From Octopus sinensis (Eukaryota): a DNA stretch of 64,000 nt. Below the pieces are notes generated by a model. The model made no database searches. It was not told where the DNA came from and was given only the letters and a program-made list of their open reading frames with translations. Positions 37,801 to 40,800 of the stretch are shown here, in pieces; positions within the stretch are counted from its first letter, which is position 1; the number at the start of each line of letters is the position of its first letter. The stretch spans positions 50,592,001-50,656,000 of the forward strand of contig NC_043010.1 of assembly GCF_006345805.1 (NCBI RefSeq), in the 5' to 3' direction. Position numbers and translations under genes: made by a program.

Positions 37801-40800
37801 AGATAGCACACACAATTGCCCAATAACACACAGAATTGCCCAATAACACACACAATTGCCCAATAACACACACAATTGCCCAATAACACACACAATTGCC
37901 CAATAACACACACAATTGCTCAATAACACACAATTGCTCAATAACACATGCAATTGCCCAATAACACATGCATTTGCCCAATAACACATGTAATTGCCCA
38001 ATAACACATGCAATTGCCCAATAACACATGCAATTGCTCAATAACACACAATTGCTCAATAACACACAACTGCCCAATAACACACAATTGCTTAATAACA
38101 CACAATTGCTTAATAATACATACAATTACTACATAGAGAAAGAAAACTTATATATACCTTTCTAATCATGTTTTTATCAACATCATCGTCACTTCTATCA
38201 TCTTCACTTTCATCATCATACCACCACTACAACTACTGCCACCATCATCACTAAGACTCCTGGTTGTCATCATTGTTACTCTCTTCTCCCATTCTCATCA
38301 TGCTTCATGTCCATGCTTAGATTAATTACTGGTATCATAGTGTCTTGTGAGATGATATAATAAAAATATTACCATCTGCCTGATTATTTTTCTAGTAAAA
38401 AGGGTAACAAGAGTTTTGGTGTTGATGCCTTTCCATAGTCCTTGATGTTCTGTGTGAAATTAAATAATTCTATTGAGGAATCAAATTTATCCACGTGAAA
38501 GTATTTTATTTGATACGTAATTATAAGGTCACCAGAGAAAGGAAATGAAAAATAATGGAAATAAAATAAAAATAAGCAATTACCATCACAGTAGCATCTT
38601 ACCATGTTCAAGGCATTATGTATTTCTTCGTTGTCTTTCTTCTAAAAGATATTTGTCCGAAATATAGAATAATCCACTGGACAAAAAAGGACAAAGTGAC
38701 ACAGATCCTGGAAAATGGAGAGTCTCTTTCAATGGGATGTATTCTATAGCTAGAAAACCTACTAAAGACTGTCCTCTCTATATAGAGTATACTCTATATC
38801 TAAGTGTAGCTACAGAAGTGTTTATATACTAGCATTTTTGTAGCTATTCTTATATAAACATTTACTTACAGAAATCTTATGAAGACTTTAACTGAACTAA
38901 GATAAAAATTATAATTACTTATTACTAATTTTTGGGGGACTTTTTGTGTTTAATTGACACGGTTTTAAGCTGGAGTTGGAAGAAAACTTCTCATCATTTA
39001 TTGTAACCAGTTGTTTAACACTTTTGATACAAACCCATGTGTAAGTGGCCCTGGTTCTTGCTTTAAAGCGATCTAAATTAAAAATTTTATGTTAATTTAT
39101 GCTTCAAGCATCAGCTTAATGACAACAGTTATTTTACTTCAATTATTTTCAAAATTAATTGAAATAAATAATGTGTATTTCAAAGAAATATGGAAATAAA
39201 AGGGTTAAGTTACTTAAAAATCTTGACTCTTGGCTCTCTTTTACTATTGGCTGTATATTGTACTCCAGTGCAAAATATATCAACTGCACAATAGTTTAAA
39301 GGGGACAAAAAGAAAAAATAACCATTTGGTTATTTGACCTACTAGGAATAGCAGCAAAATTCCCTCCAACCACACTTTGTGTGTTGGAAAAAAAGAAATT
39401 TGACACATTGGATAATGTAGCTCAATGAACCCATGAATACTAACCTGGAGTTAAGCAACAATATACCAGTCATATTTGTCTTGGTCTAATGAACTTCTTT
39501 CTCCGTTGTTAACCTCCATTGCATCAGACAGCATGTTAAGTAAATCAATGTTTCTCAACCTTGTTAATTATTTTGTATATAAGCTCACTCAACCATGAGA
39601 GAAGCTGAGAGCCAGGCTTATTAGATATGGTAGCTGAGTATATAGAATGTTGTTTCATTCCTAAAGATACAAACAACACAGTTGTCTACAACATTTTTGA
39701 ATCTTGAAAAGCATTTCTTCATAAACTTTATTCTATTTGCCCCAGTTAGTCTCAATAGAAAAAAAATTCACATTCATTTCCACATCATGCACGAGTGGTT
39801 TGTGTGGGACAAACACCTGGTTTTATTAAGAAAAACGTAAATATAGGAAACAATTGCTCTACTAAGTTATAGAAATGCCTAAATCTACAGAAGCTTATAA
39901 ATTACTCTTGCATGATGTAGTTGGAAATATTAAAATTTAGAAAACAGTTTCCAGTGATATGTCTTCAAGGAACCAACCTCCAAGACTGCAGTCCTAAAAA
40001 AAAAGCTACATCATTTTAAAGGGTCCTCCTATATTTATCATTTGTCATTTCTTTTTTTTTTTTCTAGTTAACTGTGATGCTGGAACCCAAGGAGAAAACT
40101 TCAACACTATTTCACACGTCATAAATTTATCTGTGCCACCAAACAAGGTCAATTTGTCTGAAAAGACCCTTAATGGCATTAACCAGCAGGTGAACTCTTC
40201 TCTCACTGCATCACCTGTCTCCAACAGTAATTACTCAACAGGTAATTGCAGGCAAACGTTGCCCTCAGTACCTCACCCCACCTCAGCTTTATTGTAACAT
40301 TAGGCAATTTTAAGCAAACTCTACCGTTGATATTCTGCCTGCTCTCAATAAATAGATTGTTAGTAAATTCTGCCTTTGTACTTGTTATTGGCAGTTGTTG
40401 GCAAACACCTCCCTCAATACCTTATTTGTTATCATTAGCATTAACAGTACCTGTATAATATCGAATAGCTTTGCTCCCATCATTGCTACTATATTAGAGT
40501 TCATGACCTCTTTTCCTCACTTCTCCCCTATTTTGTTGTGCTCATTTTTTCACTTGCTTAGTTCAAGCTTGGGTTGAAAATTTCATAGATATAAACATCC
40601 ACTCTAATACTCACATCTTGTTCTTACTATTAACCATACTAAATTTGTTACAACTAATCTTACTGAATGAATTTTTTCTTTATTGGGAATCACTTGAATG
40701 GGAAATCCATTACCTTCAATCATTTTGATTTTTTTTAAAAATGATATAACACTTCATGGCAACCCTATCTACACCTGATATTATCACTCATTATTCCTCA

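Follow-up and report, generated by a model that had tools for sequence, protein, structure and literature searches.

The closest described relatives of the gene considered here are human ENTPD4 (NTPDase4, LALP70; entry 6WG5 of the Protein Data Bank, PDB) and vertebrate ENTPD7, nucleoside triphosphate diphosphohydrolases (NTPDases) that share with the octopus enzyme the GDA1/CD39 fold, a two-transmembrane topology and the apyrase conserved region (ACR) motifs. NTPDases work by lobe rotation (cf. the title of PDB entry 3ZX3), and accessible sequons in luminal domains are normally glycosylated. Human ENTPD4 reportedly has two splice forms, LALP70 and LALP70v, set apart by an 8-residue stretch, VSFASSQQ, which lies immediately behind ACR4 and closes the next exon; the difference stems from alternative use of a splice site, and the stretch is visible in the sequence of 6WG5. 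The two variants are reported to differ in enzymatic properties (Biederbick et al., J Biol Chem 2000). Here, a stretch of 64,000 nucleotides from Octopus sinensis (contig NC_043010.1, positions 50,592,001 to 50,656,000 of the forward strand; hereafter the window) was analysed, within which an ENTPD4/7-type NTPDase gene carries at positions 40068-40241 a short exon between those encoding ACR3 and ACR4. With a probability of roughly 0.9, this segment is a real cassette exon, retained in some splice forms and skipped in others, that adds to the enzyme a 58-residue, sequon-bearing insert predicted to be disordered.

The anatomy of the exon is that of a frame-preserving cassette (Table 1). The DNA directly 5' of it reads ...tcatttgtcatttctttttttttttttctAG and that directly 3' reads GTAATTGC, so written that the acceptor comprises a tract with pyrimidines at 20 of 21 positions ending in ctAG, and the donor joins an exon-terminal CAG to GTAATT (donor score 6/7). 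An AG acceptor, a GT donor, a length divisible by three and an open reading in the host frame are thus combined, and likewise in four lineages. The sole open frame is the one demanded by phase 1-1, with 2 and 5 stops in the other two. Splicing from 34439 to 40068 and from 40241 to 45005 yields ...HGIE-VNCDAG...NYST-DHPLVVVDV... (hereafter inclusion), and the direct junction 34439 to 45005 (skip) is likewise in frame. The encoded peptide of 58 amino acids holds four N-x-S sequons (NLS, NLS, NSS and NYS) and one Cys. An original prediction, made from the letters of the window alone, had listed these splice signals, the divisible length, the phase, the absence of stops, the four sequons and the Cys, all of which hold on recheck; the two junctions that it proposed were reproduced in the spliced gene model, and the exon is indeed missing from the list of open reading frames (ORFs) of at least 60 amino acids, as it had remarked.

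The exon is already known as annotation in O. sinensis, and to that extent its description as hidden in the original prediction was not borne out. Used as a profile query, the inclusion model retrieved XP_029644808.1, 'ectonucleoside triphosphate diphosphohydrolase 7-like isoform X2 [Octopus sinensis]' (735 aa), which matches the query along its whole length (732 window-encoded residues) at 100% identity and contains the 58 residues verbatim. In RefSeq, isoforms X1 (740 aa), X2 and X4 (624 aa) of O. sinensis include the cassette (XP_029644807.1, XP_029644808.1 and XP_036364910.1), and X3 (682 aa; XP_029644809.1) lacks exactly those 58 residues; these four are products of the same gene as the window model, with no sequence difference, and are annotated without functional or evolutionary comment. 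A similar division appears in Octopus bimaculoides, with the cassette in X1-X3 and skipped in X4, and in the cuttlefish Acanthosepion (Sepia) pharaonis, with one model that includes and two that skip. The annotation of Octopus vulgaris holds no inclusion form, both of its proteins (CAI9733144.1 and CAI9733145.1) being of the skip type. No paper on this cephalopod ENTPD4/7 cassette was found in the searchable literature.

Transcript assemblies show both forms in two decapodiform species. The sequences concerned are Logan contigs of 2.3-4.8 kb, each assembled from a single run of the Sequence Read Archive, with inclusion and skip contigs originating from different runs. Full-length proteins of a cuttlefish-like species (P0156 and P0159) and of a squid-like species (P0158 and P0157) are each encoded uninterrupted on such contigs, which therefore represent spliced mRNAs. 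In the cuttlefish-like pair, inclusion contig L004 and skip contig L005 are 99.6-99.8% identical on either side of a 183-nt insertion; in the squid-like set, inclusion contigs L006 and L007 differ from skip contig L008 by a 201-nt insertion, with flanks 99.7-100% identical between L006 and L008. Cassette splicing at the ACR3-ACR4 junction is clean in both species. Together with the division of the RefSeq isoforms, these contigs agree with the alternative splicing that had been proposed from the sequence.

Conservation across cephalopods provides a further line of evidence. The annotated protein of Argonauta hians (genome contig L003) is of the skip type, yet the orthologous intron gives a tblastn match of 84 aa, where cattgtcatttcttttcattttttttttcatatattttcctctcttgtAG directly precedes an exon that begins TTAACTGTGG and ends AATTACTCAACAG, followed by GTAATT. 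This exon of 252 nt has a splice-site context identical to that of Octopus, is open only in the corresponding frame, starts with VNC, ends with NYST and includes a Cys; its four sequons (NSS, NVT, NTS and NYS) align positionally with the four of Octopus. Outside the exon, the introns of Octopus and Argonauta can be aligned only through dispersed repeats. The motif TTGTCATTTCTTTT is common to both genera upstream of the acceptor (window 40034-40047; L003 11611-11624), and may be a branch point or a splicing-regulatory element.

Within Octopus, the O. vulgaris genome carries a cassette 100% identical to that of the window (L010, 52036-52209), despite its omission from both annotated proteins. 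Between O. sinensis and O. bimaculoides (L009, 38073-38246), the exon is 96.6% identical and the flanking intron 92-93%, with complete identity in the last 20 intron nucleotides before the cassette and the first 10 after it. Four of the six exon differences are synonymous; the only two that are non-synonymous change SNSNYST to SNTNYLT, and with it the last sequon is lost. At greater distance, the cassettes of Argonauta, A. pharaonis (CAE1176337.1) and the squid-like species (L006/L007) match that of O. sinensis in intron position and phase, start with VNC(G/D), end in ...ST followed by (E/D)HP, and hold 2-4 sequons. They differ from it in length (252, 183 and 201 nt, respectively, against 174 nt, all four divisible by three), in a middle that is barely alignable and, for Argonauta, in being omitted from the annotation. 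In all four lineages the cassette starts with T(T/C)AACTGTG, ends with ...ACAG and has a combined Ser, Thr, Asn and Pro content of 44-48%; its middle is approximately 20-40% identical between lineages, with many indels, every one a multiple of three. Frame and splice sites are therefore kept across octopods and two decapodiform species, the comparison that the original prediction had proposed as a check. The cassette arose no later than the last ancestor that octopods share with decapodiform cephalopods; from then on the splice sites, the multiple-of-three length, the VNC start, the S/T/N-rich composition and the terminal ...ST have been kept, with the middle left free to diverge.

The spacing between ACR3 and ACR4 was surveyed in 90 ENTPD4/7-like proteins of a wider set and then in 130 of a family-focused set, in all of which both motifs could be located. 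Spacing is typically 20-49 residues across both sets. In the family-focused set (~130 metazoan homologues), loops of more than 50 residues occur only in cephalopod proteins, at 96-105 residues; in the wider set (90), 7 proteins of unassigned species reach 53-80 residues, and long loops are thus not unique to cephalopods. Human ENTPD4 (6WG5) aligns tightly on both sides of the insertion point with ~5 residues between, unlike the octopus inclusion form, to which the cassette adds 58. On L002, a contig from outside the cephalopods, the equivalent position and phase are likewise occupied by an intron, within which neither a cassette homologue nor a good frame-compatible exon was found; a tblastn match in that intron (9564-9611, E=2.5) was judged to be due to chance, having no pyrimidine tract and stops nearby. 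A decapodiform-like genome contig (L001) was uninformative, as both the ACR3 exon and the cassette are missing from the 10 kb upstream of its ACR4 exon. The survey and L002 agree with the earlier suggestion of a lineage-specific exon, as does human ENTPD4 with that of a short vertebrate loop.

An AlphaFold2 model of the inclusion form, built on an alignment of 80 sequences (mean predicted local distance difference test score, pLDDT, 73.8), is confident in the catalytic core. Its low-confidence segment, residues 253-310, coincides with the cassette (254-311) and is bounded by flanks with pLDDT around 90, the insert lying between a helix after ACR3 (230-244) and a strand leading into ACR4 (315-321). 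As the low-confidence segment is the cassette between folded flanks, the insert is predicted to be a flexible, disordered surface loop at the connection of the two lobes of the enzyme. Its position between the two predicted transmembrane helices assigns it to the predicted luminal domain, and the four sequons fall in the predicted loop (residues 273, 282, 296 and 308), so that the luminal, sequon-rich placement proposed earlier stands, and the structure prediction suggested as its check returned disorder between well-folded flanks. Per 100 aa, the insert carries 6.9 sequons and the remainder of the luminal domain 0.57, a 12-fold difference in density, and inclusion raises the number of luminal Cys from 8 to 9. 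Over-representation of sequons beyond composition was not significant in a shuffle test; it is by its composition and sequon density that the insert is enriched.

What the cassette does must be set against other explanations for its presence. Its position in a repeat-rich intron of 10.5 kb and its absence from the ORF list might suggest a chance pseudo-exon, or an exonised fragment of a transposon without a coding role. When every AG...GT segment of that intron that would preserve the frame was enumerated and scored by pyrimidine tract and donor, however, 40068-40241 ranked first by a wide margin; it was the sole candidate on both strands of the whole 64-kb window with an acceptor score of at least 18, a donor score of at least 5 and a length of at least 120, and 0 of 500 Markov-1 simulated introns gave an equal one. 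A second copy of the cassette region was not found within the window, nor was a Pfam match for the insert, and a transposon or local-repeat origin was rejected on these grounds. Given also an open frame kept in four cephalopod lineages and its presence in mRNA contigs, an accidental exon is vanishingly improbable, and is already refuted by the Argonauta orthologue, the RefSeq identity and the RNA contigs. It is improbable, too, that the cassette is constitutive in Octopus, with the skip forms (X3 and the models of O. vulgaris and Argonauta) reduced to annotation artefacts or rare mis-splicing and no regulated choice between them. Full-length skip transcripts stand beside inclusion transcripts in the RNA-seq assemblies of two decapodiform species, the skip form of cuttlefish is found on many contigs, and skip isoforms are among the RefSeq models of two Octopus species; constitutive use would nevertheless fit the very strong splice sites (a 20/21 pyrimidine tract, CAG followed by GTAATT), inclusion in three of four isoforms in both O. 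sinensis and O. bimaculoides, and the fact that no Octopus RNA contig of either form was retrieved.

A different question is whether the insert matters to the protein. It may be a near-neutral disordered spacer, tolerated on the surface and kept only as an open frame, in which glycans and Cys have no specific role; we consider this rather unlikely, but a serious contender. The low identity and many indels of the middle, a sequon count that fits composition, and an insert predicted to be disordered and without a Pfam match would all be expected of such a spacer. Less easily accommodated are the reading frame, acceptor, donor, initial VNC and S/T-rich terminus that octopods and two decapodiform species have all retained, the restriction of indels to multiples of three, the ratio of 4 synonymous to 2 non-synonymous changes within Octopus, where exon identity exceeds intron identity, and the positional alignment of four sequons between Octopus and Argonauta. 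Several observations also count against our own reading, that of a genuine, alternatively included and sequon-bearing cassette. The XP_ isoforms of O. sinensis are predicted models, and the O. vulgaris annotation and the Argonauta model hold the skip form only. Skip-form proteins of the cuttlefish cluster are found on more contigs than inclusion forms, and inclusion may therefore be the minor form there. The number of sequons is not strictly kept, with 2 in one squid-like species and NYS changed to NYL in O. bimaculoides, and the four in O. sinensis do not exceed the expectation from the N/S/T-rich make-up of the insert (shuffle mean 2.5, P(>=4)=0.20). Because the count matches composition and the squid-like species has only 2, selection may have acted on a generic hydrophilic, glycosylatable spacer rather than on particular sites.

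Table 1. Features of the ENTPD4/7-type gene in the window (positions are those of the window).
Feature	Position	Strand	Details
Alternative first coding exon (MTDSSSS + AG)	23791-23813	+	Sequence ATGACTGACTCCTCCTCATCCAG, then gtaaga; isoforms X1, X3 and X4; found by regular expression
Coding exon, N-terminal transmembrane helix and ACR1 (DCGSSGSR)	28369-28805	+	
Coding exon, ACR2 (ATAGMR)	32765-32915	+	
Upstream constitutive exon, ACR3 (GKQEGVYGWIAVNY)	34276-34439	+	Ends ...GKQEGVYGWIAVNYILNKFAHGIE + G (...HGIE + G)
Acceptor region of cassette	40034-40067	+	Kept TTGTCATTTCTTTT motif, then polypyrimidine tract, then ctAG
Alternative cassette exon	40068-40241	+	174 nt, phase 1-1; encodes VNCDAGTQGENFNTISHVINLSVPPNKVNLSEKTLNGINQQVNSSLTASPVSNSNYST, residues 254-311 of isoform X2
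Donor site of cassette, GTAATTGCAG	40242-40251	+	
Downstream constitutive exon, ACR4 (DMGGGSMQIAFE)	45005-45156	+	Starts AT-CAT-CCT (DHPLVVVDV...GVIDMGGGSMQIAFE)
Coding exon	47439-47599	+	
Coding exon	48814-49138	+	
Coding exon	50201-50283	+	
Coding exon, ACR5 (QWTLGA)	51972-52133	+	
Last coding exon of X1-X3	53790-54180	+	C-terminal transmembrane helix, cytosolic tail, stop codon
Alternative terminal coding exon	57939-57981	+	(S)MTKGSYEPKREPL, then stop; isoform X4; C-terminal transmembrane helix absent

To build the gene model, the best homologue was placed on the window by tblastn and each junction then inspected; the model is complete and all of its introns are GT-AG. Its inclusion product (P0152) scores 361 bits with the Pfam family PF01150 (GDA1/CD39), for which the gathering cut-off is 24.9; the insert divides this match into two stretches. 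The motifs DCGSSGSR, ATAGMR, GKQEGVYGWIAVNY, DMGGGSMQIAFE and QWTLGA follow one another in the spliced model in the order ACR1-ACR5, an assignment that we take to be established knowledge of the family. All of the best protein matches of the inclusion model are named ENTPD4- or ENTPD7-like, and the best fold match in PDB is human ENTPD4 (6WG5; E 4.7e-58, 42% identity). Hydrophobic helices at residues 29-47 and 634-651 correspond to long helices at 26-52 and 629-660 in the AlphaFold2 model. Judged by sequence, the host gene thus belongs to the ENTPD4/7 type of GDA1/CD39-family NTPDases, the Golgi/lysosomal class.

Variation in the gene extends to both ends of its product. The alternative terminal exon lies 3.8 kb 3' of the usual last exon and replaces the C-terminal transmembrane helix and tail; it, or its orthologue, is used by X4 of O. 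sinensis and by X1, X3 and X4 of O. bimaculoides, X2 of the latter ending otherwise. Isoforms with this exon are predicted to be singly anchored enzymes. A regular-expression search over the window found no MAR-type first coding exon of 8 nt, as used by isoform X2, which may lie upstream of the window.

A long CA/TA-rich low-complexity tract with a GC content of 0.46 and a strong GC skew occupies 5286-7336; ORFs of up to 606 aa on its two strands (HTHTYTHT...) were rejected as spurious products of the tract and not a gene. Two ORFs of 246 and 193 aa (29401-30781, + strand), in the intron that follows the first large coding exon, carry a ...LLFADDIKL... motif and, judged by eye, look like a reverse-transcriptase fragment of a non-long-terminal-repeat (non-LTR) retrotransposon. 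Copies of one repeat family, (ATT)n followed by ...ggtaagctggcagaatc..., are found on the + strand at 34450-35560 and 45165-45400, beginning approximately 10-30 nt 3' of the donors of the ACR3 and ACR4 exons on either side of the cassette intron; many copies are present in Octopus loci. In Argonauta, a short degenerate copy of the 3' end of the ACR3 exon, SANCSLNKFAHNIE, lies approximately 210 bp 3' of that exon (L003 10736-10784); it is 79.5% identical to window 34402-34445 and, from its sequence, looks like a small intronic duplication. The O. vulgaris protein CAI9733144.1 has an odd N-terminal extension of 187 aa, which may be a mis-fused transposase-like ORF.

As a genome feature, the cassette is an ordinary alternative exon, and its recovery validates splice signals, phase and frame as a sufficient guide to short exons. 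What may be unpublished is that it is common to octopods and decapodiforms and absent from the other animals sampled, with its boundaries, first three residues and sugar-site-rich character kept whilst the rest drifts. In mechanistic terms, inclusion places 58 N/S/T/P-rich residues, with four sequons and an extra Cys, behind the helix next to ACR3 and ahead of the strand running into ACR4; in the skip form the loop is short, as is usual for the family. The insert would probably be N-glycosylated in the secretory pathway, giving a more heavily glycosylated isoform; a loop at the connection of the two lobes may tune folding and quality control, stability, or lobe movement and hence activity, and the ninth, unpaired luminal Cys may mediate oligomerisation. 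The effects on stability, trafficking or substrate preference put forward in the original prediction are likewise hypothetical. A bolder proposal, which we hold to be speculative and unlikely in its full extent, is that the cassette is a coleoid innovation acting as a regulated switch, in which inclusion alters lobe movement, disulfide-linked oligomerisation or lysosomal/Golgi stability, and the isoforms differ tissue-specifically in nucleotide preference, cation dependence or half-life, in parallel to LALP70 and LALP70v but by an independently evolved exon. The human variants, as reported, resemble the octopus cassette in arising by alternative splicing within the luminal catalytic domain, near ACR4, of an ENTPD4-type enzyme; they differ from it in that 8 residues after ACR4 are concerned, and not a separate 58-aa exon before it. 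Were the octopus isoforms to differ enzymatically, the cassette would provide a second, independent case of splicing that tunes an intracellular NTPDase, a modest, testable question and hardly a surprise.

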